Shown: positions 2,729-45,462 of the stretch, piece by piece
How positions within the stretch are numbered: position 1 is the stretch's first letter
How the letters are laid out: every line of letters starts with the position of its first letter
Assembly: GCA_038496445.1 (NCBI GenBank)
Contig: JALMLS010000076.1
Location: 62,001-126,000, forward strand
Direction: 5' to 3'
Length of the DNA stretch: 64,000 bases
Source of the DNA: Trichosphaerium sp. ATCC 40318
Taxonomy: Eukaryota > Protista > Tubulinea
Made by a program: the position numbers and the translations under genes
The notes under the pieces: generated by a model
What the model was told of the DNA's origin: nothing
Database searches by the model: none
Seen by the model: only the letters and a program-made list of their open reading frames with translations

Positions 2729-5700
2729 ATGAGTACGGAGGGCATGACTCTTGAGGAGATAAAGGCGCATTTGGCCGAGCAAAAGGCTAAAATGCAACGT
2801 ACACTCGAGCTAAAAAGAGCCAGACTGAAAGCAAAGCGCCTGGCGAAGAAGAGACGAGAGGAAGAAGAGAAAAAGAAGATGGAGGAGTTCATGCGAGAGC
2901 AACAGGGTGAAGCAGAAGCGATGAACAAGATGAGGGCAACGATCCAGGCCAGAAAGGCTGCAGTTGAAAATCAACGCGCTAAAATGGAACAGGAGGCGCT
3001 TGCAAAGTATGTACAATGTACCAAACACAATTTTCCTTTTACAAAAATCTCGCCGCATCAATTTTCGTTCTACGCGTTAGAGGCACGATTTAAACATAGT
3101 TGTAACGTTTTCCTAAAGGTATGAAGCTGAACAAAAAACAGACGACGACGCAATGCGTATGATGAGAGAGCGTATTGCAAAGCGTAAACAAGAAACCGAA
3201 AAACGTAGGCGTGAGATTGAAGAGGCTAATATCAAAAAATACGAAAAAGAACAACAGGTACGTTATTGGGAATGGTTTAGTTGAGAAACCTAAACCGAAA
3301 AAAGAAGAAAATACGCTATAAAAATTCAAAACCGAACAATATTAATTGTTGTACCTTTAGGCTGAAGAAGATGCCGTTAAGCAAATGCGTGAACGTATTA
3401 ATAGGCGTAAACAAGAGCTTGCCTCCAAAAAAAATAAATTCGAACAACAAGCCCTCCTACAATTCCAAAGCGAGCAGGATATGGAAGAAAATGCTATTAA
3501 ACAGATGAAAGAAATGGTAGCGAAGCGTAAAAAGGAAGCTGCTGAACGCAGGAAGCAAAAAGAAGAAGAAGCCATGAAACAATTCAAAGCAGAACAGGAG
3601 GTTAGTAAAGTTTTCTTCACAAGCAAAACCAATTTTTTTACCTATTTTCATTGAAACTTGGGCTTACTCATTCCAAACTAGGCTGAAGAGCAAGCACTCG
3701 CTGCTATGAAGGCTCGTGTAGAAAAAATAAAGGCTGAGGCCGCCCAGAGACAGAATAAATTCGAAGCAGCTGCAATGGAGGAGTTCAAGCGTGAACAAGA
3801 CTTGGAAGAGGCTGCTATTTCTAATATGAAAGAAAGTATTTCCAAGAGAAAAGCTGAAGCCGAACAAAGAAGGAAGATTCGAGAAGAAGAGGCTATGAAA
3901 GAATTTAAGGCTGAACAAGAGGTACGATTTTGTTGTACAGCTTGAATATTTTCATTTGGCATAACTATTGCTGGGTTTACTCACCTGTGGTATAGTCTGA
4001 AGAACAAGCAATGGCACTCATGAAAGAGCGCGTACAAAAGCTTAAAGCTGAGAGAGCAAAATCAACAAACAAATTCGAGGTGAAGTTTTTTTAGGTTTTA
4101 GACATAAATTAACTGTTAAACAGGCTGCTGCTCTTGAGCAATATAAACAAGAGCAAGAGATGGAAGAGGCTGCTATCACACAAATGCGTGACTCTATCGC
4201 AAAGCGCAAAAAGGAAGCTGCACAGAGGAGACAGGAGAGAGAAGAACAGGCCATGAAAGAGTTCAAGGCTGAACAAGAAGCTGAAGAGGAAGCTATGGCA
4301 CTCATGAAAGAGCGTGTAAGAAAACTCAAGGCTGAGAAAGCAGCATCAAACAATAAATTCGAGGTACGTGAAGCGGCAAACAACAAAAAAAACCGAAGTA
4401 CATTTTGTGATGGAATTTTTACAAGGGCTTTTTGCTTGAATTAATGTTATCTTTTTTTTTTAGAAAGCTGCTATCGAACAGTACAAACAAGAACAAGAGA
4501 TGGAAGAAGCTGCCATCACTGCTATGAAAGACCGTATTAAAAAGCGCAAGGCTGAGTCTGCTGCAAGAATGAAGGCTGCTGAGGAGAAGGCACTACTAGA
4601 ATACAAGGCCGAGGCTGAGGTATTTTTTGTTTGCTGGGTTTTTTAACTATTCTGTTTTGGCGATTATTCAATCAACTGTGGCCTTACTTCTTTCAAAATA
4701 GGCTGAAGAGCAAGCACTTTCTGCCATGAAAGTCCGTATACAAAAGATAAAGGCTGAGGCTGCCAAGAACCAGAATAAATTTGAGAAAGCTTCAATGGAA
4801 GAGTTCAAGCGTGAGCAAGAAATGGAAGAAGCTGCTATTTCAAAGATGAAAGACAGCATTGCCAAGAGAAAAGCTGAAGCTGAACAAAGAAGAAAGGCCA
4901 AGGAAGAAGAGGCCATGAGAGAGTTCAAAGAAGAACAAGAGGTAACGCATTGAATTGTTTTAAATTTCGCTGAATCATTCATGTGTATTAATATCTTTAG
5001 GCCGAAGAAAAAGCCCAAGCAGTTATGCGTGACCGTATTAGGAAGCAAAAGGCTGCTCTTGCCGCTAGCAATAATAAATTTGAAGCAGCTGCACTGGCAG
5101 AGTTCCAACGTGAGCAAGAAATGGAAGAAGCCGCTATTTCAAAGATGAAAGACAGCATTGCCAAGAGAAAAGCTGAGGCTGAGGCTAGGAGAAAAGCCAA
5201 GGAAGAGAAAGCTATGAAAGAGTTCAAGGAAGAGCAAGAGGTACGTTAAGATGTAAACCCTTGAAAACTAGTCTAAAGTATGTTTAGGCTGAAGAAAAAG
5301 CAGCCGCAGCAATGCGATTGCGTGTTGAGGAAGCCAAGAAGAATAAAGCTGCTACTACTAATAAATTCGAAAAAGCTTCAATGGAGGAGTTCAAACGCGA
5401 GCAAGAAATGGAAGAAGAAGCTAGGAATAAGCTAAAAGAGGCCGTAGCTAAACGTAAAGCTGAAGCTGCCGCACGTGATAAGGCAAAGGAAGAAGCAGAG
5501 ATGGCAAAGTTCAAGGCTGAGCAAGAGGCAGAAGATGAAGCTGCTAAGCTCATGAAAGAGCGTGTTGCAAAGCAAAAGAAGGCTAAAGAAGATAAACGTA
5601 AGGCTGAGGAGGCAGCCCTTCTAGCAGAGTTCAACAAGATGAAAGCTGAAGAGGTGCGGTAGAGAACTTTGTATTTTTTTTGTTGACTTTTCTTTGTAGG

Positions 5701-5747
5701 AAGCTATGCACAAAATGTTGGAAGCTGAGTTTTCCGATGTTGCTTAA
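2729..5747 (+). CDS. E/K/A/R-rich helical tandem-repeat protein (40-aa subunits, 80-aa exon unit)
   Basis: About 11 exons with repeats such as AEEQA..MK.R..KIKAEAA..QNKFE.A.MEEFKREQEMEEAAISKMKDSIAKRKAEAEQRRK.KEEEAM.EFK.EQE. Ends EAEFSDVA*. Confidence 0.85.
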
Positions 5748-6017
5748 TACAGTTCATGTCTTTGTGTGTGCGTTGTGAAGATACGTACCCAAATTTTAGG
5801 AGGTCTCTATTGAGATATCGTGCGATTGTAAATATAATTTTTCGGAAAATACATAAACCCTCTGTTGATGTTGTATAAGCGTCGTAGACGCTAAGGAACA
5901 TCTAGAGGCATTAAAAAATGAAAAATAAAAAACAAAAAATTACGAAAACACGTTTTGGATTTAGTTGTGCCTACATACCCCTTAAGCGCCAGAGCACTTG
6001 AAATTGACTGCAGTACA

Positions 6018-7480
6018 ATGAAGAGCCTTTCAATAGCATTACTTGCAGTTGTTACATTATCAGCTGTATTCTCAATAGTGGTCGAGGTAATCTAGTGCCA
6101 AAACAAATATTCAAAACGCTAAATCGTTTTAAAGGAGCAACCGAATGCCTCTCCAGTTGTTGTAACCTACATAGACAAAATTAACGGTTGGTGGCCGCCA
6201 GCTACAATCGCAGCAGGTAAGATACCAATTGTCCAAGCTTTTTATTTCCAATATCACGTGCCAGGGCTCTTTTGTTGTCCAGCAGAACTTTCGCTTAACA
6301 TTGCTTTTTTAGGTATTGGTGTGCCTGGTTACGCCAAAGACACCAGTTATAATGTTTTTAACATTGCTTTCTGGTTGAGCAGTGGACCAACTGATATTGC
6401 CGATATTTGGGCAGACCCTCTTGTACGTGAAATAACTAAGCAGCTGCTTACTGAGTCATTCTCGCAAGTTTACTTGTTTTCTAGCATTATTTCAGCGCCC
6501 AAAACCCTTTTGGAAGCACTTCAGCTGAGATACAAGCCAATTTAACGAGGTACTACATCTAAAATCGAAAACCTGTTCTTATCCAACGAATTAGTATGTA
6601 TCACGCTGCTGGTAAAAAAATCATGATTAGCGCTTTCGGTGCTACAGAGTTTCCAACATCAGGCGGCAAGGACGCAGTTAAAACGTGCACAGATTTGGCT
6701 AATTTCGTAAAAACGAACCAGCTTGATGGTGTTGATTTAGATTATGAAGACAACGCAGCTATGAATAGTGGAGCAGGTAAAGAACAAGAAACAACTGAGA
6801 TTAAAAAAAATTAGGTGTTCAGTGGTTGATTGACTGTACAACTGCGATAAGAAAAGTACTACCTGTTGGTCAATATATTCTGTCACATGCTCCTCAAGCA
6901 CCGTATTTTATGGGTGAACCCAAGTATCCAAAAGGTATGTTTGTTATTTGTGCCACCAAGTTTCGTACTGTGATACTAGGAGGCTATCTTGAGGTTGATA
7001 AACAAGTTGGGCACCTAATTGATTACTACAACGTGCAATTCTACAACCAAGATCAAAGCTCTTATGATACACTAGAATCCCTCTTTATCAATTCAAACGG
7101 TTGGTACGATAATACAAATTAAACTGTACATACAAAAATTGAAACATCTACTTCTTTATTTCCCGTTGTACTGGAATCTTTTTTTGTGGAAAATATCGCT
7201 TAAAGTCACGTGATTTACTTGCAATTGTTTTAGGGCAACCAACAGTTCTATTCAACAAATGATAAATAATGGTATCCCTGGATCGAGAATTGTAATAGGC
7301 AAGCCTGTAACCACTGGCGATGCATCAAACACAGGATGGGTTGCAGCTTCAGCTCTTCAAGGTATAATTAAACAAGGGAAACAACAGGTCCCACAATGGA
7401 CATCTCCAGGTGTTATGACTTGGCAGTATAGCAGTGACAAAGAAGGTTCATTTATTGATGCAGTCGCACAAGCGTTGTAA
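6018..7480 (+). CDS. Secreted GH18 chitinase
   Basis: Signal peptide MKSLSIALLAVVTLSAVFS, KIMISAFGA, catalytic DGVDLDYE (DxxDxDxE), SHAPQAPYF, NVQFYNQ, GVMTWQY. Confidence 0.92.
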
Positions 7481-14419: not shown

Positions 14420-17400
14420 TTAGTATTCGACAACGTTGAGTGGTTGCTCTTGCGCCTCGCTGCGTTGCTGGCTTCTAGCAGATCGCGTAGAAGATCGGCT
14501 ACGGAAAGAATCGCGGGCGCTCTTGACAGTTCTTGATGACAACTCCTTGACTTGGTCGGACAAGTTGCCTAAGAAACCTCTTTCGCCAACTGTTCTGACC
14601 TTTGGTGTAGTCATTACTCTGGCGTCATTGTAGGCGCGCTCATCGTCAGATGGTTCATCAGAGGAGCTTGCGTCATCAGTGTCATCCAATGCGTTGGACA
14701 AGAAGTTTTGAGTGTTGATGGTAGAGGCGACTGGTAGATCGCTGGCACCAACGCTTTGCATCTCGAGTTGTTTATCTTCTTTTTCTTCGTTGTTCTTTCT
14801 TCTCTTTCTTCTGATTACAAAGAAAGCGACAAAGACGATACAACAGCAACACAATCCTGCGCCGACACCGGCTCCTGCCAAAGCGCTGAGCGGTACTGTT
14901 GGACCTTCTTCTTTAGCTTGAGCTTCACCAGCTTCTTCTTGAATAGAAGCTTCGATGGTAAAGAAGTATTCGAATTTTTGTTCGGCTGAGTCGTCGAATG
15001 TAGATTCGGCTGTTTCTTCAATGGAACGGACAAGCATACGTTTACGTTCAACGTTGGTTGTCGAAGAGGCACATTCACATCCAAACTTGTATTCTACGAG
15101 AACAACAGCAACTGTGCAGTATCGTGTAACGTTTACAGTTTCTAGAAGTGCTTGTAAGCGACAGAACAGTACAGTGATCAAGTGCAAAAATTTAACGTAC
15201 CAGGAGTAACGGTTCTGTTCGTAAAGAAGGTAAAACCGCTCTTATCTGTGAGGAGCTCGTCATCCATTCCAAAACCGATATCGGTGTATTGTGAACCACC
15301 GTATTCTTTGTCGAAGATAAGGTTGACGTTGTCGTCACCGACTGGGTGAACGAAAATCTTGAGAATCTCAGAAGAGAGGATTGTTGCGGCACCACCAGTA
15401 GTGACTTCGGCAAGGAAATGGACTCGTTGATCGTAATTGAACAATTGTTGAGGTATACGGTATTCTGAATCGACGAAAGCAGTAAGTTGACCTTCCAGTT
15501 CAATCTCAATTTCAGCTTGAGCACAGAAGTTTTCTGAGTTAATGGCAAGTACAATATCGCGCAAAGAACCTGTAGTAACAAAATGAGTACATTAAATAGG
15601 ACTAAGATGCTGCGTGTTTATATGCCGTACCTTCGTGTTGGCATCCTCTGCATCCGAATTCGAATCCTGCAGTGTAATCGGCAGTCAATTCGCACTCAGC
15701 ACCGACAAGAATGGTGATGATATGTTCTTGAGAACAGTATGCTGTTTCTTCAGTACAGTTCTCTTGTTCACCTTGTTCAATAGTGACTTCCTCAAATTGA
15801 GGTGTCACACCCTTTTTGCTGATATTGACGATCTCACGACCAATAATTTCAACAGGTACTGGACAAATGGACTTGACAATGATAATACCCTTTTGGAAAG
15901 GCAAACCAGCAACAGCTCCAGACAAGTCAATGTATTGTCTAATGATAGCAAACCTGTATGATGTGTGAGTGTGTGAACGGGAAATACTCGGATTGCTACG
16001 TACATGCAGTCATCAGGGGAAACCTCGGAAGTGTTTGGAGGAAGTGTGGTTGGTGGTTGAGTAGTAGGAGCAGCAGTAGTTGGAATAACAGTTGTTGGAG
16101 CAGCTGTTGTTGGAGCAACTGTCGTTGGTGGCGATGTTGTTGGTGGTGCAGTAGTTGGTACGGCAGTAGTTGGCGCGGCAGTAGTTGGCGCGGCAGTAGT
16201 TGGCGCGGCAGTAGTTGGAGCTTGGGTCGTTGGTCTCAATGTAGTTGGAGCCAATGTTGTCGGTGGCAACGTGGTTGGAGCAGCTGTCGTTGGTGGCGGT
16301 GGTACGTAAAAACCGAAATCAACAGTTGTGTCTTCTTCACCTGATGCAGGGGTTGTCACTTCAGAGCAAGACAATAACTAAATGATGTGAGTTTATGTTT
16401 TTAAGCATTCGAGTTTGTACCACGTCGTTCTTAAAGTTAGCCTTAGTAGCAAGTTCACCATTGGAATCCAAGTTTGGTGAATCGCCAACGCGTACTGGAC
16501 TGAGAACAAAGTTTTCACCTATTGTGGTCATGTAGTCGACACAAACAGTGTATTTAGTGTTAGGAAACAATCCATCTCTCTCTGTAAAGTAGTATTCGCC
16601 ACCTTCATTAGTAGTTGTGGAAGTTATTACTTCGTCATTTTCAGAGAAGAGTACGACTGTAACATCAGGGATGCCAACATCACTCTCTTCATCTTGAACA
16701 CCATCTCTGTTACTGTCTGCGAAGATAAAGTTACCAATCCTGACTGGAGCAGCAGTTGGAGGAGCTGTCGTTGGAGCAGCAGTCGTTGGAGCAGCAGTTG
16801 TAGGAGCAGCAGTTGTAGGAGCAGCAGTAGTTGGAGGTTGTGTAGTTGGAGCAGCTGTTGTAGGTGGAGTAGTCGTTGGAGGAGGTGTAGTAGGTGGCAA
16901 CGTAGTTGGAGGTTGCGTAGTTGGAGCAACTGTTGTTGGTGCGGCAGTTGTAGGTGGCAACGTAGTTGGAGGACCAGTTGTTGGTGGAGGAGTAAGGTAG
17001 AAACCAAAATCAATGGTCAAATCTTCTTCGCCAGCATCAGGTGATCTAGCATGTGCACAAGATTGAACCTGCAAGCTGAGTTAGAAATGTAATAAGTTTG
17101 ATAAGAAATGATACGCACAACTGAGTCAATAACTCTGTCTACACCGTTGGAATCTTCAACAGAATCTACAGCAAAAACTGGAGATGTTGAATAACCATTG
17201 CCAAGAGCTTCGACATATGAAACACAGATGATGTAGTCAGTGTTTGGTTCAACACCATCAGTTTCATCAAAAATATACGTTTCAGTAGTATATTTGGTAG
17301 CAATCAAATCTTCACCAGTGCTATCACGGAGGGTTACAACAAAATCAACCTCAGAGAAAGAGTCTTCTCCGACTTGGGAACCGTCTCTGTCGGAATCTTC

Positions 17401-20400
17401 GAAGATTCTGTCACCAATACGGACCGAAGCCTTTTGTGTTGGAGGAAGAGTGGTTGGAGGAGCTGTTGTTGGAGGTGGAGGTTTGTGAAGACCGAAATCA
17501 ATCGTCTCATCAGAGAAACCTTCACTTGGAGTGGTCACTTCAGCACAAGACATAAGCTAGAAAAATTTGTCAGCGGGAGCTATGTGGTAATGTTAAAGTC
17601 TGTACGTTGGTGCCATATGCGTCGTGTACTGCAGCAGCACCGTTTGAATCGTAGTAGTGGCTTGTTGTGAAGACAGGAGATGTTGTCCATTCGTCACCAA
17701 GCATGTCTTTGAAATCGACACAGATGATGTAGTCAGTTTCAGGAACCAATCCATCAGTTTCATCAAAGTGGTATTCACCTTCAGGTGTTGTCGTGGTTGT
17801 AGCAATCACAGTTTCACCTGTCTCATCGAGAAGAATGACTGGAATCTCTTCACCAATTGGTTCTTCACCTTCTTGGTCACCATCGTTATCAGAATCCTCG
17901 AATACTTTGTCACCAACTTGTACTCTTGGGAGAGGTGTTGGAGCGACAGTTGTTGGAGGAGCTGTTGGTTGGAGATCACCTGAATAATTCAATGAGTTGG
18001 TGATGTTAAAAAGCATTGACAAGCGACGTACATAGACTGAAGATCATGTTGTATGTTTCACCAACATTTCTGTAACCTGAAACAATTACTTTAAAAGTGT
18101 TGCCTGAGATTTGGGTTTCGGTCTCAGCAGGGAAGTTGGAAGAGAGAGGAGTCATGTGCTCGACATTGTAGTCGTCAAAAGTACATGTGTACTCAAGAGG
18201 AGGTAGATAACCTGCGCGAGCGGCAGTATTCATGATGACAATCATACCGTCAGAGTCGATATCAATTGACAAAGAGACTAGAATCATGTTAATACATTGT
18301 ACTAAAAAATAAGAAACTAAATGAAATATGACGTACTGAATCTATTGTCAAAAGTTTCTTCACTTCCAATAAATGGGTCGTCACCATCAGCGACAGTAAA
18401 GTCAGGCATATTAGGATTCTTTTTGTAGTATTCAAAAAGATTGACACCTTGCAAGTATGCTACGGAGAGCACACAGGTACCAGTCTTACCAACTTCAGGA
18501 CCATGAGCACAAGGGTATGGCGTTGGAGGAAGTGTTGTTGGAGGAGGAGCTGTTCTTGGAGGAATTGGAGGAAGTGTCGTTGGAGCCTCACCAGGAGCTG
18601 GAGTACCGCACAACTCTTGGAAGAAATATCCATAAGGACAATCTGGTGGAGTTGGAGCGGCTGTGGTTGGTGGCGCTGTTGTTGGGATGGCTGTAGTTGG
18701 AGCCTCTGTAGTAGGAGCCTCTGTAGTAGGGGCAGCAGTTGTTGGTGGAGGTGGAGGGAGATAGAAACCGAAATCGATGGTTAGATCTTCGTCACCTGCA
18801 CCTGGGGCTACTACATCATCACAAGCCAAAATCTAAAAGAATTTAGAACAAGCTCCACAAGTTAAGTAATGTAACGTACACTGTTCGAGTAGACAGCATG
18901 TACTGCACCCACACCATTAGAATCATGGGCTGAGGTGGTTTCATGGGCTGGACTCAAAGCGTATTGTGAACCAATGGCGCTCTGGTAGTCAACACAAACC
19001 TTGTAGTTTTGATTTGGTTGAACACCACTATCCTGATCAAAGTAGTAGTAACCCTGATCAGTGACTGTACTTGCGATGATATTGTCGCCAGCGGCATCCA
19101 AAAGAATTACTGTAAATACCGAAGTGAAAGCTAAATCACCACCTTGGTCGCCATCACGGTTTTCATCATAGAAAACAAAGTCACCAATTCGCACTTTAGG
19201 AAGAGGAGTTGGTGAAGCTGTTGTTGGAGGAGCGGTTGTTGGAGGAGCAGTAGTAGGAGCAGCAGTAGTTGGAGCAGCAGTAGTTGGACTAGCAGTCGTT
19301 GGGACAGCAGTTGGAGGAGCAGCAGTAGTTGGAGCAGCAGTAGGTGGTGGAGATGTCGTTGGTGGGGCAGTCGTTGGTGGCTCTGAAGTAGGAGCTCTTG
19401 TTGGAGCAACTGTTGGTTCTGGTGTTGGTGGAGCTGGGTGGAAACCGAAATCGAAAGAAGTATCGGAGAATCCAGAAGCTGGGGATCTGACAGGTGCGCA
19501 CGACATGACAAGCTCTTCGTTGACTACAGGATAGACAGATGGTTTACCATTTGAATCAGTAGTGGTGTCACTGCCTTGGTATTGGAGAGAAGGAACATAT
19601 TCTTCCTCAAGAACATGGTAGTTAACACAAACAATGTAGTTTGTCTCAGGAAGCAATCCAGTTGTTTCGTCAAAGTGGTATGATCCGAAAACAGACTGTG
19701 TTTGAGAAACAATTTCTGTTCCGTCTTCGCTGAGGAGGTACACTGGCATGGATTGAGAGAATGGGAATTCACCATCTAGATTGTGTGAGAGATGTGTTGG
19801 TTAAAGAAAATGAGTTGCGCACCATCAATGCCGTTCTCGTTGAAATCTTCGAAGATTGTATCACCAATAGATACTTCAGCAGGGGTTGGGGCAGCTGTTG
19901 GGGCGCTAGTAGGGACAGGCGTTGGTGGGGCAAGATAGAAACCGAAATCGATTGTCAAGTCTTCACCACTAGCTGGTGCGGTAACATTAGCACAAGCCAT
20001 CATCTATTCAAAGTTAGGTGGAATTACTCACTAATAATCGTACCATTTGGGAGTAATCTGATACTACAGTGGCTACACCGTTTGAATCCTCAAAGGCAGA
20101 AGCGGCAGATCTTGGAGAAAGCACATAGCTTGAGCCGAGAGATTTCTGGTAGTTAACACAAACAGTGAATTTTTTGTTTGGTTCAACACCATCAGACTCA
20201 GTAAAGAAATATTCACCAAGAGAGTTTGTTACGGTTTCTGCAAGTAAGTCACCGGTTTCATTAAAGAGCGCAACGTCGATTGGCTCGGTAAATAATTCGT
20301 GATTTTCTAAAGAACTGTTTAGTTTAGTTTGCTATGTAGTATATTGATACCTTGTGAACCAGATTGATCAATATCTTCAAAGATCAAATCACCGATGCGA

Positions 20401-23400
20401 ACAGGCGTAGCTGTTGGTGCAGCAGTTGTTGGAGGAGAGGTTGTTGGCGCAGCAGTTGTTGGACCCTCAGTTGGAGGAGGAGTCACAACAAATGGAGCTT
20501 GTGTTGTTGGAGCAGCTGTAGTTGGAGCAGCTGTTGTTGGTGCGGCTGTAGGAGCAAAAGTTGGAGGAGGAGGAATAAAGAATCCAAAATCAACGGACAT
20601 ATCCTCGAAACCTGAAGCAGGACTAGTCACAACAGCACAAGAGAGTACCTAATTTAATTAAGCCACAAATCAGAATAATTGAAAAATCGTACAGTATTCG
20701 CTTTGTATTCAGGGCGAGTGGCAGGAGAACCATCAGAATCAAGCATGGCTTCGCTGGCACGGACTGGACTTAGGTCGTAGTTTGCACCAATAGTGCTGGT
20801 GTAGTCAACACAAACTGTGTACTCGGTGTTAGGGAGTAGTCCATCATTTTGATCGAAAATGTATTCACCACTTTCATCAGTTAGTTTGACGACGTGTTCT
20901 TGATCGTTGATAAAGAGAATAACAGCAGCATTGCTGATTGGAGTATCATCTTCATCTTGGTGACCATCGTGGTTGACATCCTCGAAGACCTTGTCACCAA
21001 TCCTGACTGGAGCAGCTGTCGGAGCGGCAGTCGTTGGAGCAGCTGTCGTTGGAGCAGCTGTCGTTGGAGCAGCTGTTGTAGGAGCAGCAGTAGTTGGAAT
21101 AGCAGTTGTAGGAGCAGCTGTTGTAGGAGCGACAGTTGTAGGTGGAGTAGTCGTTGGAGGAGCTGTTGTAGGTGGCAACGTAGTTGGAGGTTGCGTAGTT
21201 GGAGCAACTGTTGTTGGTGCGGCAGTTGTAGGTGGCAACGTAGTTGGAGGACCAGTTGTTGGTGGAGGAGTAAGGTAGAAACCAAAATCAATGGTCAAAT
21301 CTTCTTCGCCAGCATCAGGTGACGTGGTATGAGCACAAGACATAGGCTAAAGGAGTAAGAGTACTGTTTAATTTAAATGCAATAGTACCTCATCAGAAAA
21401 GCTATGAGATTCTGGTTTACCGTTAGAATCTTCTGTAGCTCCAGTTGTGTAAACTGGAGAGAGTGAATAACCATTGCCAAGAGCTTCGACATATGAAACA
21501 CAGATGATGTAGTCAGTGTTTGGTTCAACACCATCAGTTTCATCAAAAATATACGTTTCAGTAGTAGATTTGGTAGCAACTACTTCGTCACTGTTTTTGT
21601 CGATTAAAGTTACAACAAAATCAACCTCAGAGAAAGAGTCTTCTCCGACTTGGGAACCATCTCTGTCGGAATCTTCGAAGATTCTGTCACCAATACGGAC
21701 CGAAGCCTTTTGTGTTGGAGGAAGAGTGGTTGGAGGAGCTGTTGTTGGAGGTGGAGGTTTGTGAAGACCGAAATCAATCGTCTCATCAGAGAAACCTTCA
21801 CTTGGAGTGGTCACATGAGCACAAGACATAACCTAGCAACTTGGTTATTGAAGCGACAACATTGGCAAAAGCGTACTCTGTCAGTGTATGCGTCATGAAT
21901 AGCAGGTACACCATCCGAATCGTAGTAGTGGCTTGTTGCGTATGCAGGAGATGTTGTCCATTCGTCATCAAGCATGGATTTGTAGTCGACACAGATGATG
22001 TAGTCAGTTTCAGGAACCAATCCATCAGTTTCATCAAAGTGGTATTCACCTTCAGGTGTTGTCGTGGTTGTAGCAATCACAGTTTCACCTGTCTCATCGA
22101 GAAGAATGACTGGAATCTCTTCACCAATTGGTTCTTCACCTTCTTGGTCACCATCGTTATCAGAATCCTCGAATACTTTGTCACCAACTTGTACTCTTGG
22201 GAGAGGTGTTGGAGCGACAGTTGTTGGAGGAGCTGTTGGTTGGAGATCACCTGAATAATTCAATGAGTTGGTGATGTTAAAATGCATTGACAAGCGACGT
22301 ACATAGACTGAAGACCATGGTATGAGTTTCACCAAGATTTCTGTAACCATCAACAAATACTTTGAAAGTGTTGCCGGATACTTGGGCGTCGGTCTCAGCA
22401 GGGAAGTTGGAAGAGAGAGGAGTCATGTGCTCGACATTGTAGTCGTCAAAAGTACATGTGTACTCAAGAGGAGGCAAGAAACCTCTACGAGCGGCGGTAT
22501 TCATGATGACAATCATACCGTCAGAGTCGATATCAATTGACAAAGAGACTAGAAGTGGTGTTAATAGAGCAAGGTACAATTAATTTAAACTAAAAATAAG
22601 AAACTAATGAAATATGACGTACTGAATCTATTGTCAAAAGTTTCTTCACTTCCAATGAATGGGTCGTCACCATCAGCGACAGTAAAGTCAGGCATGTTAG
22701 GATTCTTTCTGTAGTATTCAAAAAGATTGACACCTTGCAAGTATGCTACGGAGAGCACACAGGTACCGGTCTTACCAACTTCAGGACCATGAGCACAAGG
22801 GTATGGCGTTGGAGGAAGTGTTGTTGGAGGAGGAGCTGTTCTTGGAGGAATTGGAGGAAGTGTCGTTGGAGCCTCACCAGGAGCTGGAGTACCGCACAAC
22901 TCTTGGAAGAAATATCCATAAGGACAATCATCAGTAGTTGGAGCAGCCGTTGTTGGTGGCGCTGTTGTTGGCGGCAAAGTTGTTGGAGGAGCGGTTGTTG
23001 GCGCAGCGGTTGGTGGAGGTGGAGGGAGATAGAAACCAAAATCGACAGACAAGTCTTCTTCGCCACTAGCAGGCGTTGTAACATCAGCACAGGACATTAC
23101 CTAAATAACATTAGACAGCGTCACTTCAAAAGTTGCGTACATTATCGGAATAGGCAGCATGAACTTCTGGGCGGCCGTTAGAATCATGAGGGGCACTTGT
23201 TGCAAACGCTTGCGAGAGAGCATACTCGGAACCAAGAGCAGCTTGGTAGTCAACACAAACCTTGTAGTTTGTTTCTGGTAGCAGACCATCTAGTTCATCA
23301 AAGTCGTATTTACCGTCTTCAGTAGTTGTTGTAGCAATGACGGTATCGCCGTTTTCATCAAACAACACAACATCAATTTCTTCCGTGAAGAGATCATCAT

Positions 23401-26400
23401 CACCTTGATCACCATCTTGATTCGCATCATTAAAAATAGAGTCACCAATTTTGACCGTGTGAAGAGGAGTTGGCGGAGCTGTTGTTGGAGCAGCCGTTGT
23501 AGGTGGTGCTGCTGTTGTTGGAGCATTTGTTGGAGCATCGGTTGGAGCTTCGGTTGGCGGCGAAACAGTAGTTGGTGGAGTGGTCGTTGGAGGAGCCGTT
23601 GTAGGCGCAGCAGTTGTTGGAGGAGCTGTTGTAGGAGCAGCAGTCGTTGGAGGAGCTGTTGTTGGTGCGACTGTTGGTGCTGGTGTCGGTGGAGATGGGT
23701 GGAAACCGAAATCGAAAGAAGTATCGGAGAATCCAGCAGCTGGGGATGTGACAGGGGCACAAGACATGATAGTCTCTTCGCTAATTACAGCATACGATGC
23801 CAATTTACCATCGGAATCCAATAATGTGTTATCACCTTGGTATTGGAGAGAAGGAGCATACTCTTCTCCTAGACCGGCCTTGTAGTCAACACAAACAATG
23901 TAGTTTGTCTCAGGAAGCAATCCAGTTGTTTCGTCAAAGTGGTATGATCCGAAAACAGACTGTGTTTGAGAAACAATTTCTGTTCCGTCTTCGCTGAGGA
24001 GGTACACTGGCATGGATTGAAAGAATGGGAATTCACCATCTAAATTATGTGAGAGATGTGTTGGTTAAAGAAAATGAGTTGCGCACCATCAATGCCGTTC
24101 TCGTTGAAATCTTCGAAGATTGTATCACCAATAGATACTTCAGCAGGGGTTGGGGCAGCTGTTGGGGCGCTAGTAGGGACAGGCGTTGGTGGGGCAATGT
24201 AAAAACCGAAATCGATTGTCAAGTCTTCACCACTAGCTGGTGCGGTAACATTAGCACAAGACATCATCTATTTGAAGTATTAGGAAGTTAATTACGGCGT
24301 TTTTTTACGTACCAAATGACTGTATGCAGTGTAAATAGCAGCTATACCATTGGAATCCTCAAATTGAGCACCGATGTAAGGTCTGACTAATTCATACCCA
24401 TCACCGAGAGCGGTCTTGTAATCAACACATACGATGTACTTTCCTTCTGGCATCAAACCATCACTTTCGTGAAAGTAATATTCACCATCAACAGATGTTT
24501 CCATCTTGGCAATGACTTCAGAGCCATCTTCACTTAGAAGAACCATAGTGAATTCCTTATTAAAACTTCCATGAAGAACTAAATTTAGATTAGCTTTAGT
24601 ACTGTTACGTGTTTGCGAGAGTTTAAGTACCTTGTTTATCAGTTCTTTCTAAATCTTCCCAAACGTAGTTACCAATGCGAATTGGAACTCTAGTTGGGGC
24701 TGCGGTAGTAGGAGGAGATGTGGTTGGAGGAGGTGTGGTTGGAGCAGCAGTCGTTGGAGCAGCAGTCGTTGGAGCAGCTGTAGTTGGTGCTACAGTCGTA
24801 GGAGGCTGAGTTGTTGGTGCTTTTGTGGTTGGAGGCGCTGTTGTTGGAGGCGCTGTTGTTGGAGCTCTGGTTGTTGGCGGTCTCGTGGACGGCGGCAACG
24901 TAGTTGGAGCTACAGTAGGCACAGCAGTAGGTGCATGAGTAGCAGGTTCGATAACACCAATGGCAGTTTTGATAACAACCTTCTTTGGAAATTTAACGAG
25001 CATAGGAATTACGTGGTCGGTTTGACGAGTCCAGTGCTCATCAAAGAATTGACCAAGATCATCGTAGTGCTCTACAACCAAGTTGGTGTAGAAACGGTAG
25101 TAATCTTCAGTATCATTTTGAACCAATTTTGCACATTCGCGCATGTTAATCCACGGAATATTACCAATCCATGTGTCGTCACACTCACCTTCACGTACTT
25201 GCTTTTCCCAAAAGAAACCTGGGTAACCACATTTGGCGGATTCGACATGATCGAATTCAACAATAGAGTGGGTACGGTTGGCAACAAATGGAGATTGCAC
25301 AGCAACAGAAAGCATATCGCAGTGGTATGAGGGATCAAGATTCAGCAAAGGAATATGAGCAGTTACTAAGACAGCGTTAGTTTTAATGTCGCCAAACAGG
25401 CCATTTTTGTACGTACCTAAAGGATCAACGATAGCAAACTCGCAAGTTTCGTTTTGGACACGTTCATCACAGTTCCTTCCTTGGTAACCTGAGCGACAAG
25501 CGCACATTTTGTTACCGAAACCGAGTTCTTCGTTGTAGTCACGTTCTACGCATTGTCCTTCTACGCAAGTATCTTCGCATCTAGATAGCGGTTCCATACC
25601 AAGATTCATCATAGGGTGGTACTCGGTATCCTTGGAGTAGAAAGTGTCGAGAGCAAGAGCGGAGTCTGGATCAACAACATTCTCGTCACAGTTGCCGAGG
25701 ATAAGATGAAAGTGAGGTTGGGCCAATAGGTCTAATTCAACAACGCTCAGTGGTAGAACAACCTCATCAGAGCCTTTTGAAACATCAGCAATGACCTCAG
25801 CCATCTTAGATGTAGGGGCTAGACGTTCAGGATTGAAGCGTTCGTTCAATTCTTTCTAGAGAGAGAGTCAGTGGTGGCCATTGATGTGTATTGTTTAGAC
25901 TAATATTACGTACCCATCCATCCAAATTTTCGTTCCACACAGTATCTTCTGAGTGAGGGATTCTGTAGATAGCAACACAAGCTTTACCATCTTGAGTGGC
26001 TTCGGTTGTCATCTTAATTTTAAAGTCGGTACATGTAGTGTAGTCGAGAGATTTTCCCCAACAGCTAAGATCGAATTCCATAATGGAAAAGGCACACTTA
26101 TTGCCTGGGTAAATCACAAGGTCATCGTTTTCTGCGCGACCGTCGCTTCTACCGCCCCAGCAAGCTGGGTCTACAACACCAAGATCTTGCACGACACAAA
26201 TGTCGCTAACAACTGGGTACATATCAACGCTTGGTGTACATGGTTCGACATGTTCAATTCTGCAAGATGCTTCAAGAGGATTGGTCATGTAGTTTTCACC
26301 GCCAGAGATGGATGTGAAATGAACAAGTTTAGCAGCTACAACGAAATTAGAAAAAACTAACAAAAGGGAGATCGTACGCTCTGAATAAACTGTGATTTCC

Positions 26401-37918: not shown

Positions 37919-38026
37919 TCAGTGTAATTATTGAGATGGTTCTTGTACAACGGTCGCTGATAAATTCACTTTTTGGCGTTAAGGAATTACAGTTGCTAAG
38001 TTACATATTTCAAAAAAAACATAACG

Positions 38027-41000
38027 ATGGGAGTTCCAGGGCTATTTTTATGGCTCATAAAACGCTACCCAGCTATGGTGCATCTTATTAACCACGAAGA
38101 AAAAGCAAAGGACACCGACGATAAATCTAGTGAGGAAGAGAAGAAAGGAGTGCCAAAAGAGGACTATTCATGCGACAACCTGTATCTTGATATGAACGGC
38201 GTTATTCATAACGCCTCTCATCCTGCAGAAGACGAGCCAGTACAGTATTTACTTATAAACGTCCCTAAAATGAGGTAGGAAGCGCTAAATGTAAAACGAA
38301 CCAAAGAACTTATTCTGTGGAAACTTGACCACATTGTAGAAGCTACCAGGTACACACTAGTAAATTACTAGTCGTTATTTTGTGTAGCGGTTGCCCAACT
38401 TTATTTTTTCAAAATTAAAACTATCGTTAGGCCACAAAAATTAGTATTTATGGCCCTGGATGGTGTAGCACCGCGCGCAAAAATTAACCAGCAACGTTCC
38501 AGGCGTTTTGTTTCAGCTAAAGGTACGAATTAACGTCAAACTCGAAAAAATTTCACATTTTTTGTTATTGCTCATTGTTATGGTTGCCTTTAATGCTAAT
38601 AATCGTAAATTTAGATAGAAAAGAGGGTGATGACAGTTTTGATACCAACGCTATTACCCCAGGCACAGAAGTAAGTGACACGTCATATCTAGATTTTTTT
38701 TTTCCGATTTTTTTCTCAGTACCTAATTTGTAGTTTATGAACGATGTTGCTCACTGGATACGTGAATACATGGAAACAAGAGTTACTGAACACCCTTTAT
38801 GGAAAGACGTAAGACCGTCAAGTGCTTGTAATGTGGGCTAATATGATTATTTTAGCTTACAGTTATCTTCAGTGACACTGCTGTGCCTTCTGAGGGAGAG
38901 CACAAAATAATGGTACACATCACAACCATTATTTTAATTACTTACTTCTTGTAGGACTACATCCGCTTCGTCCGTAAACAACCAAACTATGATCCTAAAA
39001 CTCGTCACGCCATATACGGTAAAGACGCTGACTTGTTCTTCCTTGCTCTTTCATCGCACGAGTTAAACTTTAGTGTAAGGCTTTCTGATGTACTACAATT
39101 ATGTAATCTAATGAGTGCACTGTAGATTATCAGAGAGGAGGCTCAGTCGTCTATTCGTCACATTGTTCCTCCTGCTCCAAAGAAGGTTGTGCCCACTAAG
39201 ACTTTGCATGTGAGCCACTTGCCGACCACTGCACAGGAGGAAGGCTTAAAAACGATATTCTCCCAAGCAGGAAAGGTTGTTGAACTCAGACTAGTTCAGA
39301 AAGAGTCCAAGTATGCTTTCATTGAATACGAAACTGTAGAGGTTGCTACAAAGGCCTATGAAATGTTTAAGGGAGAGCTTGTTATTGATGACGAGCATAT
39401 TAAGATACAATACGCACGTGGCGGTATGTTCGTTGAAAATTCTTTTTGTTCCAATTATTGGTTGGCTAAACACAAGCTAGATAAGCCTAAACACGGTGAA
39501 AAAAAAGAACGAAGTAAGGATACTATTTATGTTGGTAACTTACCTTGGGCTATCAACGAAAGAGGTCTTGCTGATTTCTTTAAGGTTTGTAGCAAACTTA
39601 TTAAGCATGTGATCATAATTGATTTGCCCTTAGGATTGTGGACCTATTGCTGAAGTACGTATCATTACTGATAGGCACACTGGACGTTCTAAGGGGTACT
39701 TTGATAGCAATCAACGCAAGCTAAAATGATTGTAGGTACGGTTATGTACGATTTTCGAAAGAAGATTGTCTTGGTAAGGCTTTAGCATTGAATGGTAAAG
39801 AACTCAGTGGTCGTGCTCTTAAGGTTGACTTCAGCACGCAAAGGAGAACTGGTATAGCATAGAAATATTATGGATATCATGATGCTGATTGTTTTCCTTA
39901 GATACAGGCATCCAACGTGTTGATGAACAAAACTTGAAGATTGGACAATTCCTTTCTTTTATTGGCATTGTAGAAAACGGTGTCGCATACCATTATTTGG
40001 AAGTGCGTATACATAGTACCTGAGTGTTAACTATGATGATTAAAATTTTAATTAGACTGCCAATTGGGATCTCGAATTGGCTATAAATTTGTACTTTGAA
40101 AAACAGAGCAAGGGCGAAGATCCTTTGGCCGTCAAAGAAACCAAAGATGAGTCTGATAAAAAAGATAATAAAGAAGAGAAACTTGAGGCCAAAAAAGAGT
40201 CTGGGGAGAAGAAAACGGAGGATGATAAGTCTACTCCGAAAAAGAAAGAGAAGGATATTCACAACGTATATAACCATTTACTATGCCCTTGAACAGGTAC
40301 TTACCTGACTGTAGGTGTTAACAACTCATCAATTGCATCAAATAATGGGTATGAGGTACGTACAAAGTGGATACCTAGCTCATGTCATATTAATTTCAAG
40401 TTAAAGGTACTGGGTGTGTCATACATCAATTATACGCGAATATATGCAGTTTGAGATTGCCAAAGAATTTACGATTGCAAAAGAGCGCATGGAGAGACAA
40501 GCGGTTAGTTTTTTTTGTTGAACGTTCAATCATTTGACTTTTATGGTTTTAGGAGTATGATGGTGTACCAATAGAAAAAGAGGTATTAGCCAAATAATGG
40601 AAAACCACTTTTGTTTACTGATTTCTTTAGCTTACACCTTTTGAACTTGACCGTGTCATTGACGACTTTGTTTTTATTTTTATCCTCATTGGCAACGATT
40701 TCCTTCCAGGTTTGTTTGGCTACTCATATTTTAGCGTATAACTGTGGGCAATAGGGTTACCGTCACTCGATGACGTATACCATGGCACAATGGACTATGT
40801 GTGGATGACATACTTGCGTTGTCTACCTACTCTTGACGGTTATCTTACTGATAGAGTCAATGTACTAAAGCAATGTTGCTAACTGTTTTGCTTATTTGTT
40901 TGTTTTTAGCTTCACCCTAAGCGTATTGCTACCTACTTGAGGGCATTAGCAGAAAAAGAAACAAGTCAGATTTTGTATGTGCTTATTTGTATTATCTACT

Positions 41001-42497
41001 TGCAGTTATTAATGCTTTCCCCGTTTAGCTATCAGTACAAGAAAGGTTACAAAGGAATTCAAAAGAAAAAGTATTTGGAAGAAAAAAAGAAGCAGATGAT
41101 AGCCGGACATCATGACTCTAAAACTGAAGCTGTTGTTGTCGAAAAGGAGCCAATGCCTATACCAGAGAACCTTGAAGATGTAGATGATGAAAAACTTAGA
41201 CAACACTACTACACCACAAAGTTTGGTTGGGAGGATGAAGACTTTGAGAAAAACTTAGCAGCGTACGCTAGCAATTTTTTTTGAAAAGTTTTTCTTACTT
41301 CTTGTCAGCTTAAAAGAATCGTGGAGAACTGGAGCTGTATGGGTCATGCGTTATTACTATGCTGTACGATTACTATCAAACATTTGCAAAATACTTAGTC
41401 TTTTGTTAGGGATTACCATCATGGAGTTGGTATGTTAATTAGTCTTCATTGCTTACCTTGGCGTGCCTTGTTTTGATCTTATTTTAACTGTTGATTTAGG
41501 TTTTATCCTTACCACTATGCTCCATTAGCCTCTGATCTAGCAGATGCGTTTGATGACTTGAAGTGCGTTAATCTCAAGGCAAATCTGTTTTATAGTTAAT
41601 AAATTCGTTTAGAGAACCAACAGCTGAAACAGTTGTTCTACCAAAAGGTCGTCCTTTCAAACCATTCGAACAACTTCTTTCTGTGCTCCCACCTCAAAGG
41701 TACATGAAAATTTTGTGCTTCAATGTCTAAACTATGTTGTCCATAGTGCTACGCTGTTACCAAAGCCACTACGTTCTTTAATGACGTCTCCTACATCACC
41801 TCTAAGCGTGTATTATCCAGATGACTTTACGGTAGATATGTTTTCTGCTGATAGAGTATGTCAAAGTTTGTTTAAAGAATGATTTGAACTAAAAACTTTG
41901 GTTAGGAATGGATGGGTATTGTCCAATTGCCTTTCATTGATGAGACTCTCCTTGTTGAGAGTATTAAAAAAGTTGCTATGCCAGTTGATGAACAAGACAA
42001 AAAGCGTAATGCTGAAGGCACAAATACTCTGTTCTGCAAAAGTGGAAGTGCTGTTGCTAAAAGAATTGGCAAGGTGCGTAGTAACAAAAAGCAATTCACG
42101 ACATTTATTCTTGTTTGCAGGTTAAGAAGACTTCTTTATCTATGGACTTTGAAACTGGTATTTCTGGTTTAGTATATGAATGTAGTGATAATGGGAAGCT
42201 TCTTAGTGCTTCTTATAACTTTATGGGTACGCAATCACATCTGTTTCTCTTTTTTTTTTTTTCTCCCGTGGTTGTTATTGACAACCTTCACAAGATGCTT
42301 CACCTTTACCGATAAAATACGGTATGCTATGTGAAGAGCTACCACCTACATTGTCAGAAGAGGTTCTATTGCGATGTCTTCCACGGAATAAGCGTAAAAA
42401 GCGAAACAGAAAACCAAAAGAGGATAAAACTGAAGTAGTGGATAAAGAAAAGAAGACGGAAGAAAAAGAACCAGAAACTAAAAAAGAAGAAAAGTAA
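38027..42497 (+). CDS. XRN-family 5'-3' exoribonuclease with inserted 2 RRM + UBA-like domains
   Basis: [98 protein letters not shown]. Confidence 0.93.
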
Positions 42498-42550
42498 ATA
42501 AAACCGGAGGTTGAAGATATTGTTGCCACAGTATTTTACTAGATTAACAA

Positions 42551-45462
42551 TCACGATAACTGTACAACTGCAAGCGTAGCTGAATAACCTGACAAACTTC
42601 GTACTACTCTACCTTGAGATAGGCTACCACTACCATCAGCATGTATACGTTCACTATTATCAAACGTAAAGTAAGACACCTATGAGCACGAGTGAGTTAA
42701 CACTTTTTCTTTTTTTTCCCTTGCGTACTGTTCCTTGCATGCCAATAGAACTCACATCTATAGTCAGCGGTATTGTGCCGCTTGGTGTCTTATTCACTGC
42801 TATAATATAAATTTTCATTGCTTTGGTATCGTGGAAAGAGAACGTGTCCACAAGTGCAAGACTTGAGGTGTTAGCTGTGATAGAATCACCAGTAACTTGC
42901 GAGCCTAAATCATACAATGTCAAACTGTCTGATGAAGCTTTGGCTACGGTACCTTTGCCATCGTAGTTAAGGTATATCTTGAAGGCATCTTCAACTAGAG
43001 ATCCATACGCAGGCGCAACCCATCTCGATGCAACGTAAGCACCTTCGCGAGCCATAACACCGAGTGCTTGTACTTGAGCAAGAGCACCAGTTATGATATT
43101 ATCACCTCCAAAGTTATACTCGGATATAGACATTTTTAATTCTAAAATAAATGAGTTTAGGTATTGTTTGTTTAAGTAGGTTGTTTGTTTTCACTACGTA
43201 AGCTAAACACAAGTTGCTCACCTGGATCGTATTGATTGATCCATCCTTGTACTCGTCTCAATATGTATATAGGGGCACTGATCCATGACTCATCAACATA
43301 AGTTGGGTCCCAAAGACTTCTTGTGCTTCTAAAAAATGCGAGTCAATTACACTTTACGTATGAAGTTGTTTGGCTTTTTTATGTGTAACGTATGATGTAC
43401 CTTAGACGCAATAATGATGTTATTGTATCTTCTGTATCACTTAACGCAACATTAGGTGCTGCTGGATAAAAATGAAGATCAATTACATCGACTAAAGATT
43501 TTCCAGTCTTCAACTTATAGTGTGCTAGTTGTTGAATGTACCTAAGAATATCAGTACACAGACTAAATCAGAATATTATTCTTACCACTCTAGTATAGGC
43601 ATGTCGCCATGAGCCTTACGATCAGGGCCATCCGTACAGCCATCCGCAGCTGAGAACATGTACGCACAATATCCCCTGAAGTAAGTTAGCTAGGACGCCT
43701 ATACCAATGTCTGTACCATGGCACTGGCCCAAAGAGGAGTGATTCGGGAAAGGCTTCCTTTAGTGCACTAGCATAAGCAACAGTACGGTTCCAAAGCCTA
43801 GATTTTAATACATTAGTTGTTGTGACACTGGTAAAATTGTTTTTAGTACTCGTCGTATGTTAACTTTTCTGGATGCACATCTCTGTGAGTTGATGACCAA
43901 AGAGCAGGTTCGTTGTCCATCATAAACCAACGAGTGGTTCCTTTACCAAATGCCTGTTTTGTATTAAATTAAACCAAAGAAATAAAGAGTTTGGCGCACT
44001 TTGTCCAAATGTTGTATCCAATCCACATTGTACGACGGCTTTGTTTCTATTGATGTATCGTGTGGATCGTTTCCAGTAATATCAGATCCATCTGGTAAGA
44101 CTCCATTGCCACAATGACCGTAGTACGGATCTACTTTTTGCTGTTTTGGATACTTTGAAAGATCAAATCCGCATCTAGATAAAGAATCAACTGAAAACAT
44201 TGCATTGCTCTTTGTTGTAACCTTTTCACTCTATCTTTTGGTCTCCAGCCAATTATTGGTGTTGTTAGCAATACTTTGGCACCTATAAAAAAGTAAATCT
44301 CAAGTATACTGCGCTAAAGTAAACCACGTGCCGTTCTCGGTAGAGTTTTTGACAAAATTGTCAGCTTTACTTCCAAAAGGAAGGGCGCTTTCGTTCTTAA
44401 CAGGGTTTGGAATATTCTCAAAATACCAGTCAGAAGCGTGATTACCTGTATCTGTATCCCATGAATATCTTGTTACAGCATTACCACCCCATCTATGATG
44501 TCATTAGAAACGAAAATAAAATTGAAGGTACCTGTTAACTGAGTATTTATTTGCAGCAAGTTGTTTTGCTGAAGCGAAGTTAACACCAAAAATATATGGT
44601 GAAACCGGCCTTCTGTTCGTATCTGACACAACAACAGTGACAGGTTTTGCTTGAGGAACTGAAGCGGTAAATTGAATATCGTCAAAATACAAAGCGCTCT
44701 CAGCAGTGTTCTTCAAAAAAAATAGTCAATAAAAAAATTACTGCCAGTTAGCAAAACCTACCGTAGTTGCTTGAAACCAAATACCACCAATAGTCACTTC
44801 AGAACCTATAGCAAACTTGATAATGTCCAAAGAAGCTATAAAAGGAATAAGCACTAAAGAGTTTTTCGAAATGCAAACCTTGTGTCCATGTATTTGCGGG
44901 TACAGGCTTTCCAAGGATATCAGATAACAAAAGACTAGCGCCAACAGCTTTACCAGAAGATAGGAGATTAACTTTTACATTTTGACTGCCACCAGTCCCT
45001 CCGTTTACCCTTTGAAAAAAAGGTGAGTATGTAACGCTTCAAAATCACGTGATCCACAAGAAATTGGCCTAGTACCAAAACGTTAATTTTCCAAGGTTCC
45101 CAAAAGGCATAACAAAGTCGCCATGGAGGTATAGCGCTTGATACCCAGCAGGTATCATACTAAGTGCGTATTTGGAACCTGAACGGACAACCTTGGGCAA
45201 AAAATTAGATATTAGTACGACTTGCTGCTGGCTGTTGAAGAAAGCGTGCCGTTGTATCTTGGAAGTTTACTTTTGCCCATGAATAGTTTTCAAAGCCGTT
45301 TAGAAGTTTACCTTGCTTTAATGTTAAAAAAGGAGTGGTTAAAGGAGTGGTTGTTGGATTGTTTGAATTTAACACACCTGTTGTACCAGAGTACACTTGT
45401 ACAGATATCTCTTGCGCTAGTATAGCGAGTACAATGCACAGAAGTAATATTGCGTGCCTCAT
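42551..45462 (-). CDS. Secreted GH44 endoglucanase/xyloglucanase with N-terminal CBM-like domain
   Basis: Signal peptide MRHAILLLCIVLAILA, VSPYIFGVNF, RWGGNAVTRYSW, MDNEPALWSSTHRDVHP (acid/base Glu), DLHFYP, ISEYNFGG (nucleophile Glu). Confidence 0.9.

Follow-up and report, generated by a model that had tools for sequence, protein, structure and literature searches.

Gene structure at the locus

The window analysed here is a 64,000-nucleotide (nt) stretch of DNA from the marine amoeba Trichosphaerium sp. ATCC 40318 (contig JALMLS010000076.1, positions 62,001 to 126,000). It contains, at 38027-42497 on the plus strand, a gene for a 5'-3' exoribonuclease of the XRN family in which two RRMs and a UBA-like domain are inserted between the two halves of the nuclease core. 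The gene model consists of 28 exons with the ATG at 38027 and the end of the stop codon at 42497, and encodes 1012 residues. The 27 introns of this model, which was built from the sequence, are all of the GT..AG type and range from 39 to 92 nt in length. The features of the gene are listed below in window coordinates, where CR1 and CR2 are the conserved regions of the XRN core.

38027-42497, plus strand: complete coding region of the XRN paralogue (gene model and translation, with spliced contigs)
38027-39140, plus strand: N-terminal portion of the nuclease core (residues 1-233), matching Pfam XRN_N (Pfam matches of exons 1, 3, 5 and 7; alignments to Xrn1 and Xrn2 chains in PDB)
38501-38649, plus strand: shortened tower/arch segment spanning intron 3, with 12 residues from RRF (residues 119-121) to FDTN (residues 134-137)
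39141-40353, plus strand: insertion of about 305 residues (residues 234-538), with introns 8-13, beginning within exon 8
39201-39416, plus strand: RRM1, residues 254-325 (Pfam RRM_1, 47.4 bits, E 1.8e-12, exon 8)
39525-39832, plus strand: RRM2, residues 343-415 (Pfam RRM_1 matched in pieces, exons 9-11)
39934-40100, plus strand: three-helix domain of the UBA_4 type, residues 433-470, split by intron 12 (40003-40055)
40101-40265, plus strand: spacer of 55 residues rich in Lys, Glu and Asp (17 K, 10 E and 7 D), read from the sequence
40354-42226, plus strand: remaining XRN core, Pfam XRN_M, with the helix IIREYM, GNDFLP, the CR1-CR2 linker and CR2 (Pfam and PDB alignments)
42387-42419, plus strand: basic C-terminal motif [11 protein letters not shown], residues 977-987 (from sequence only)

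Transcript evidence

Transcript contigs from four public runs (X1, X2, X4 and X5), belonging to four studies, were aligned to positions 38000-42600, and the spliced contigs jointly span 38022-42509. The contig from run X4 (2745 nt) extends from 38458 to 42504 and includes every exon of the RRM-RRM-UBA cassette, with lengths identical to those of the model for exons 9-12 (281 nt), 14-19 (419 nt) and 21-24 (223 nt). The contig from run X1 (1277 nt) starts at 38022, five bases upstream of the ATG, and continues to 39851 and then into exon 12. Because the lengths of these contigs match the spliced model, the mature mRNA has its RRM and UBA exons in frame, with an XRN half on either side. Single contigs from different studies span the order XRN_N, RRM1, RRM2, UBA and XRN_M, showing few mismatches or none, and a GT..AG intron is removed at each of the 15 splice joints listed for these contigs (10 more existed).

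The exon structure itself ties the cassette to the nuclease. The IIREE motif at the end of the first core part and RRM1 share exon 8 and are not separated by any intron, and judging from the exon lengths, skipping all cassette exons together would cause either a frameshift or the loss of conserved core. Four sequence variants were found between the runs, all of them synonymous and two of them lying within RRM2.

The initial annotation of this locus, made from the genomic letters, had proposed the XRN-RRM-RRM-UBA-XRN order and left its confirmation to transcripts. The contigs from the four studies now show the cassette spliced in frame, and all of the peptide strings quoted in that annotation were found in the spliced product. 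A 57-nt intron between RRM1 and RRM2 (39424-39480) had been overlooked there, within what appeared to be an open reading frame; as this intron is in frame, the reading is unchanged.

The nuclease core

Pfam scans were run exon by exon, and the profile positions matched were in register from one exon to the next. The XRN_N profile (PF03159) is matched collinearly by exons 1, 3, 5 and 7 at profile positions 1-52, 84-113, 153-177 and 197-235, and the XRN_M profile (PF17846) by exons 17, 18, 23, 24, 25 and 26 at positions 2-24, 26-57, 222-236, 244-262, 267-295 and 302-352. In the product, the landmarks IIREE, IIREYM and GNDFLP occupy residues 229-233, 547-552 and 602-607 respectively, and core exons align in the PDB search to Rat1 residues 316-339 and 717-761.

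All seven acidic, metal-binding catalytic residues are intact (D55, D105, E182, E184, D212, D214 and D604, the last one within GNDFLP) when compared with the reference lists for XRN1 and Rat1 (PMC5499597), as had been noted from the genomic sequence. The 5'-phosphate pocket ([14 protein letters not shown], residues 107-121) aligns with the Xrn1 and Xrn2 chains and has the Lys, Gln, Arg and Arg of the [12 protein letters not shown] motif. In CR2 the WFYPYHYAP motif is kept, and the CR1-CR2 linker is short and K-rich. Both family profiles and the seven acidic residues are present, and the gene is a real and expressed member of the XRN 5'-3' exoribonuclease family.

The LPFIDE motif is followed by about 160 residues, so that the product has no C-terminal extension of the XRN1 type, which agrees with the earlier remark that the long extension of XRN1 is missing. 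The basic motif near the C-terminus (residues 977-987) is a putative nuclear localisation signal and possibly hints at a nuclear location of the enzyme.

Judged by its N-terminal spacer and its CR2 scores, the enzyme is of the XRN2/Rat1 type, which is a first correction to the initial annotation. Exon 1 aligns over residues 1-70 with XRN2 chains, including the spacer found only in XRN2 that places the first Asp at position 55 instead of 35, while Xrn1 chains cover exon 1 only from residue 49 (49-70). Exon 26 scores 33.9 bits with Schizosaccharomyces pombe Rat1 and 19.9 bits with Xrn1. The CX2CX4HX4C zinc knuckle, which is carried in the CR1 loop by all of the 203 XRN2 proteins sampled, was not found in the inserted stretch of the Trichosphaerium protein. 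The knuckle is not strictly subtype-defining, being present in animal and some fungal XRN2 proteins and missing in yeast Rat1.

The RRM-RRM-UBA cassette

RRM1 lies entirely in exon 8 and scores above the Pfam cut-off for RRM_1 (PF00076, 20.7 bits). RRM2 is divided among three exons which were scanned separately; exons 9, 10 and 11 match RRM_1 profile positions 1-20, 22-39 and 41-70 with 18.4, 13.7 and 22.4 bits respectively. The RNA-contact motifs of RRM2 are canonical (RNP2 IYVGNL and RNP1 KGYGYVRF). In RRM1 the RNP1 motif KYAFIEY keeps both aromatic residues, and the RNP2 motif reads LHVSHL.

The UBA_4 domain (PF14555, cut-off 21.8 bits) is divided by intron 12. The first of its two exons gave no Pfam match when scanned by itself, and the second, exon 13, matches the last 17 profile positions (25-41 of 43) with 23.8 bits. 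We therefore bridged the two with a local UBA_4 hidden Markov model (HMM), built from three complete UBA_4 domains elsewhere in the genome. The local HMM aligns residues 438-470 over the exon junction with 27 bits, compared with 8.7 bits or less in 2000 shuffles. Pfam matches, exon positions and spliced contigs thus agree on what had first been read from the sequence, namely two RRMs and a UBA-like unit inside an XRN with XRN sequence on both sides. The sensing of ubiquitin or NEDD8 is a reasonable hypothesis that draws on the UBA_4-like family membership alone.

A genomic donor of the cassette was sought. For the RRM1 exon no paralogue occurs in the assembly at E <= 0.001, and six other UBA_4 loci exist, none of which was linked to the RRM1 exon. 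In three of these six (L018, L020 and L021, on contigs C37, C60 and C42) the UBA_4 match stops at profile position 30, after NW(D/N)L(N/Q) and then V, which suggests an intron position common to the three and unlike that of the XRN cassette.

Position of the insertion in CR1

Exon 7 aligns to residues 212-250 of S. pombe Rat1 and 183-221 of Kluyveromyces lactis Xrn1, and exon 17, which carries GNDFLP, aligns to Rat1 316-339 and Xrn1 272-294. In Chaetomium thermophilum Xrn2 the CR1-CR2 linker corresponds to residues 423-568, and the CCHC zinc knuckle lies in a separate loop inside CR1, at residues 266-304 (PMC9512700). This knuckle is located on the active-site side of the enzyme and helps RNA binding; its removal lowers the affinity for RNA 1.5-3 fold and slows the decay of structured RNA (PMC9512700). 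As the alignments of exons 7 and 17 flank residues 250-316 of Rat1, they place the cassette in the zinc-knuckle loop of CR1, at the border between Pfam XRN_N and XRN_M, and not in the CR1-CR2 linker. This is a second correction to the initial annotation, which had put the insertion in the CR1-CR2 linker and had described that linker as usually low-complexity or carrying a zinc knuckle; its wording agrees with the border of the two Pfam profiles, though not with CR1 and CR2 as structurally defined.

The spacing of conserved motifs reflects the size of the insertion. From DADL to GNDF there are 390 residues in the Trichosphaerium protein, compared with 95-111 in 203 XRN2 proteins and 72-105 in 45 viral XRNs. 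The paralogues and the viral XRNs align to residues 1-233 and again from about residues 545-590, omitting the insertion. It is this alignment that sets the C-terminal edge of the insertion, because neither PDB nor Pfam gave a significant match for exon 15.

The shortened tower

The initial annotation had also described the tower segment as short. The spacing from RRF to FDTN is 12 residues in the Trichosphaerium protein, compared with 35-36 in 199 XRN2 proteins, and the X1 transcript contig agrees in length with the shortened tower. From DG to ITPG there are 34 residues, compared with 57 in an animal-type XRN2 (L024, described below) and a median of 45 in 50 XRNs from viral contigs.

A compact XRN of 511 residues on an IMG/VR contig (L026; IMGVR_UViG_3300003323_000817, from 5001) has a DG-to-ITPG spacing of 32, and its tower is shorter still. 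By this sequence comparison the short tower is unusual, not unique, and the second short-towered protein indicates that tower loss occurred more than once.

Paralogues and genomic context

When the entire assembly was searched in six frames with XRN_N, three XRN genes came up; they lie on contigs C41, C139 and C57, the last being the gene with the cassette. The XRNs on C41 and C139 have a short loop at the insertion site with neither RRMs nor a zinc knuckle, and the one on C139 has a long tower. The gene on C57 is therefore one of three paralogues, in keeping with its first description as a paralogue, and it alone among the three has the cassette. A search with PF18334 for an XRN1-type paralogue gave no match anywhere, controls included. 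A weak XRN_N match (E 5.6e-4) was also observed at C43:129481-129759 (L015), where the gene starts with MGIEGLWKWL and seems closer to FEN/XPG than to XRN.

Downstream of the XRN gene, the transcript contig of a neighbouring gene (window 42531-43133) begins 34 nt past the XRN stop codon, and an open reading frame of 157 residues on the minus strand at 42660-43133 is without a Pfam match. Elsewhere in the window, a tandem duplication of about 4.27 kb was observed at 17300-24200, with copies that are 94-99% identical. It contains minus-strand open reading frames of 295 residues that carry SdrD_B-like domains and a repeat with a 15-nt period; the GC content of this region is raised to 0.44-0.46 and its GC skew is about +0.2.

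Occurrence of the architecture in other organisms

A phmmer search of 1.84 billion representative proteins with the translation of 39126-39584 (RRM1 and the beginning of RRM2) returned only generic multi-RRM proteins among the best 150 matches listed, the top one scoring 96 bits with an identity of 43% or less. None of these 150 matches has XRN motifs or XRN_N, in a library that is without the amoeba's own protein and covers such organisms thinly. A metagenome scan with exon 8 gave no matches.

The architecture was also approached from the side of the nuclease, with 53 intronless XRN genes from IMG/VR contigs which supplied the full-length queries for three word-index searches. None of the approximately 320 distinct XRNs listed (the best 120 of more than 5000 per search) contains a Pfam domain other than XRN_N and XRN_M. 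Animals or giant viruses dominate these lists, and as each list shows only its nearest 120 entries, rare architectures would be missed. In the literature no description of an XRN with RRMs was found, and in the parts of the Trichosphaerium genome paper's supplements that were available to us (PMC10521059) the gene is not mentioned.

The RRM-RRM-UBA layout within an XRN core was found in no other XRN examined; it is known from one non-model species, and its rarity is weakly established. An origin of the cassette XRN specific to this lineage is plausible and has been weakly tested.

Relation to giant-virus XRNs

An N-terminus of the form MGVPG.FLWL together with AKI preceding QQRSRRF is found in 50 of the 53 XRNs from IMG/VR. 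The Trichosphaerium gene has Gly5 and Leu8, in its N-terminus [12 protein letters not shown] at 38027-38062, and AKI in place of AKM at 38449-38500. The same set was found in none of the 198-202 cellular XRN2s sampled.

The gene was placed in a quick tree of 58 rows, from which the insert was removed and which has no XRN1 outgroup. It joins the branch that separates 15 XRN2-like rows (SH-aLRT 97) from 42 viral rows (SH-aLRT 100). Its terminal branch is very long (1.49), and long-branch attraction is a real risk. Membership in the giant-virus clade was rejected, as the 42 viral rows group without the gene despite its Gly5, Leu8 and AKI. An intronless XRN2 of 781 residues on a contig filed as viral (L024; IMGVR_UViG_3300038405_000043, 5001-7343) is 54-60% identical to annelid and mollusc XRN2, and is explained either by recent acquisition from an animal-like host or by mis-binning of the contig.

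About 6% of the gene models in the Trichosphaerium genome have been traced to giant viruses, many of them with introns (PMC10521059), and a link between this gene and the giant-virus XRNs is for that reason conceivable. One scenario, to which we give a slim chance, is that the gene is the nearest cellular relative of the viral XRN clade, either captured from it or its donor, which later gained 27 introns and the cassette and is now a decay enzyme that is guided by ubiquitin and targeted by sequence. If so, its targets could include ubiquitin-marked stalled ribonucleoprotein complexes, or it could play a role in virus-host conflict.

Proposed function and alternative explanations

We think it probable that the gene encodes an active exoribonuclease of the XRN2 type in which the socket of the zinc knuckle holds RRMs that engage RNA or substrate, together with a UBA-like docking domain. 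The XRN2/Rat1-type core is predicted to carry out processive 5'-3' decay of RNA with a 5'-monophosphate. In the surface loop of CR1 a module of about 305 residues, made up of RRM1, RRM2, the UBA_4-like domain and the charged spacer, would replace the CCHC knuckle. Because the corresponding loop lies on the active-site face, the RRMs most likely hold the body of the RNA downstream of its 5' end, or select RNAs, and feed the catalytic centre. The cassette may in this way be a stronger and more selective form of the role played by the zinc knuckle. Docking of the enzyme on a protein partner is the most likely role of the UBA-like domain, and ubiquitin or a ubiquitin-like mark would be the obvious candidate for this partner.

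Several points weigh against this proposal. The shortened tower/arch could alter the handling of substrates, and the RNP2 motif of RRM1 has a His where an aromatic residue is usual. Ubiquitin binding is not universal among domains of the UBA_4 type. The placement of the cassette with respect to the active site is borrowed from the zinc-knuckle loop of another species. Finally, the transcript evidence consists of assembled contigs, in which rare isoforms are hidden and expression levels are not given.

The same domains could serve mainly to dock or localise the enzyme, with the RRMs and the UBA-like domain binding proteins or placing the nuclease in a compartment or condensate while the XRN core finds RNA in its usual manner. 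The partly degenerate RNP2 of RRM1 would fit such a role, as would the long charged spacer, the basic tail and the fact that UBA-like domains bind proteins. We nevertheless consider it unlikely, as the RNP1 and RNP2 of RRM2 are fully canonical, RRM1 retains both aromatics of its RNP1, and the loop concerned is known as an RNA-binding site in XRN2 (PMC9512700). That the protein is instead a catalytically impaired or regulatory XRN-like scaffold, as a consequence of the short tower/arch and the large interruption of its core, is very improbable in our view. The tower of 12 residues against 35-36 in XRN2 and the long terminal branch of 1.49 are what this explanation can draw on. On the other hand, the protein retains all seven acidic residues together with its phosphate pocket and stacking motifs, and the four variants are all synonymous; a tower shorter still occurs in the compact XRN on the IMG/VR contig, and the zinc-knuckle loop accepts insertions in normal XRN2s.

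Two further alternatives concern the architecture and not its function. A fusion artefact, whether from faulty assembly, from an RRM/UBA gene nested in the locus or from exons usually removed by splicing, is essentially excluded. Nothing positive speaks for it apart from the rare isoforms that contigs would not reveal, whereas single spliced contigs bridge all domains and thereby rule out a nested gene or spliced-out RRM and UBA exons, IIREE and RRM1 are encoded in one exon, and no joint that skips the cassette occurs among the 15 listed (10 more existed, as stated). It could also be that the architecture is ordinary, with RRM-bearing loops widespread among the XRNs of protists that are poorly sampled, and with domain databases annotating them already. 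The bias of the XRN sample towards animals and giant viruses, and the lack of the amoeba's own protein in the library, leave room for this; it appears rather unlikely to us given that the XRNs listed have no extra Pfam domain, the best RRM matches no XRN motifs, and neither the metagenome scan nor the literature a second example.

The presence of two RRMs and a UBA-like domain in the zinc-knuckle loop suggests that this loop has served as a general socket for targeting modules. XRNs are normally targeted by separate partner proteins, and to our knowledge the zinc knuckle of XRN2 is the sole known built-in RNA-binding addition to the XRN core. The gene offers a natural test of how far the choice of substrate can be built into a nuclease. 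Should the UBA-like domain bind ubiquitin, ubiquitin marks would be tied directly to 5'-3' RNA decay within one polypeptide. The giant-virus XRN signature, in a genome with heavy viral gene traffic (PMC10521059), adds an evolutionary question.

Comparison with known systems

The closest parallel is found in the XRN2/Rat1 enzymes with a zinc knuckle, such as those of C. thermophilum and animals, which have the same core and the same spacing that places the first Asp at 55. In these enzymes the loop that runs from the ILREE strand to the LREYL helix has an additional nucleic-acid-binding element, and the cassette is located in the same loop. They differ in the size and nature of this element, as the knuckle consists of about 17 residues in a loop of about 40 whereas the Trichosphaerium insertion of about 305 residues has no CCHC. 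Compared with animal-type XRN2, the tower of the Trichosphaerium protein is about 24 residues shorter, and the small tree places the protein outside the XRN2 group that was sampled.

The acidic residues D55, D104, E205, E207, D235, D237 and D336 of Rat1 from S. pombe and Saccharomyces cerevisiae correspond to D55, D105, E182, E184, D212, D214 and D604 respectively, and both Rat1 and the Trichosphaerium protein have a short C-terminal region without the XRN1 domains. At the insertion site, however, Rat1 has a plain short loop with no zinc knuckle, and its tower is full; the Trichosphaerium protein combines the cassette with a short tower.

The compact XRNs of giant viruses (Nucleocytoviricota; L027-L076) share Gly5 and Leu8, AKI, a shortened tower and a small core with the amoeba gene. 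They are intronless, 540-640 residues in length and have a loop of about 10 residues at the insertion site, in contrast to the 1012 residues, 27 introns and insert of about 305 residues of the amoeba gene.

Yeast Cue2 and NXF1/TAP, the latter with an RRM and a TAP-C domain, are nucleases or RNA factors in which RNA-binding domains occur together with UBA/CUE-like ones; they are RNA-acting proteins steered by a small three-helix domain of this kind, as is proposed here for the XRN cassette. Both come from other catalytic or transport families, unrelated to XRN, in which the domains are ordered differently, and homology is claimed for the generic domains only.

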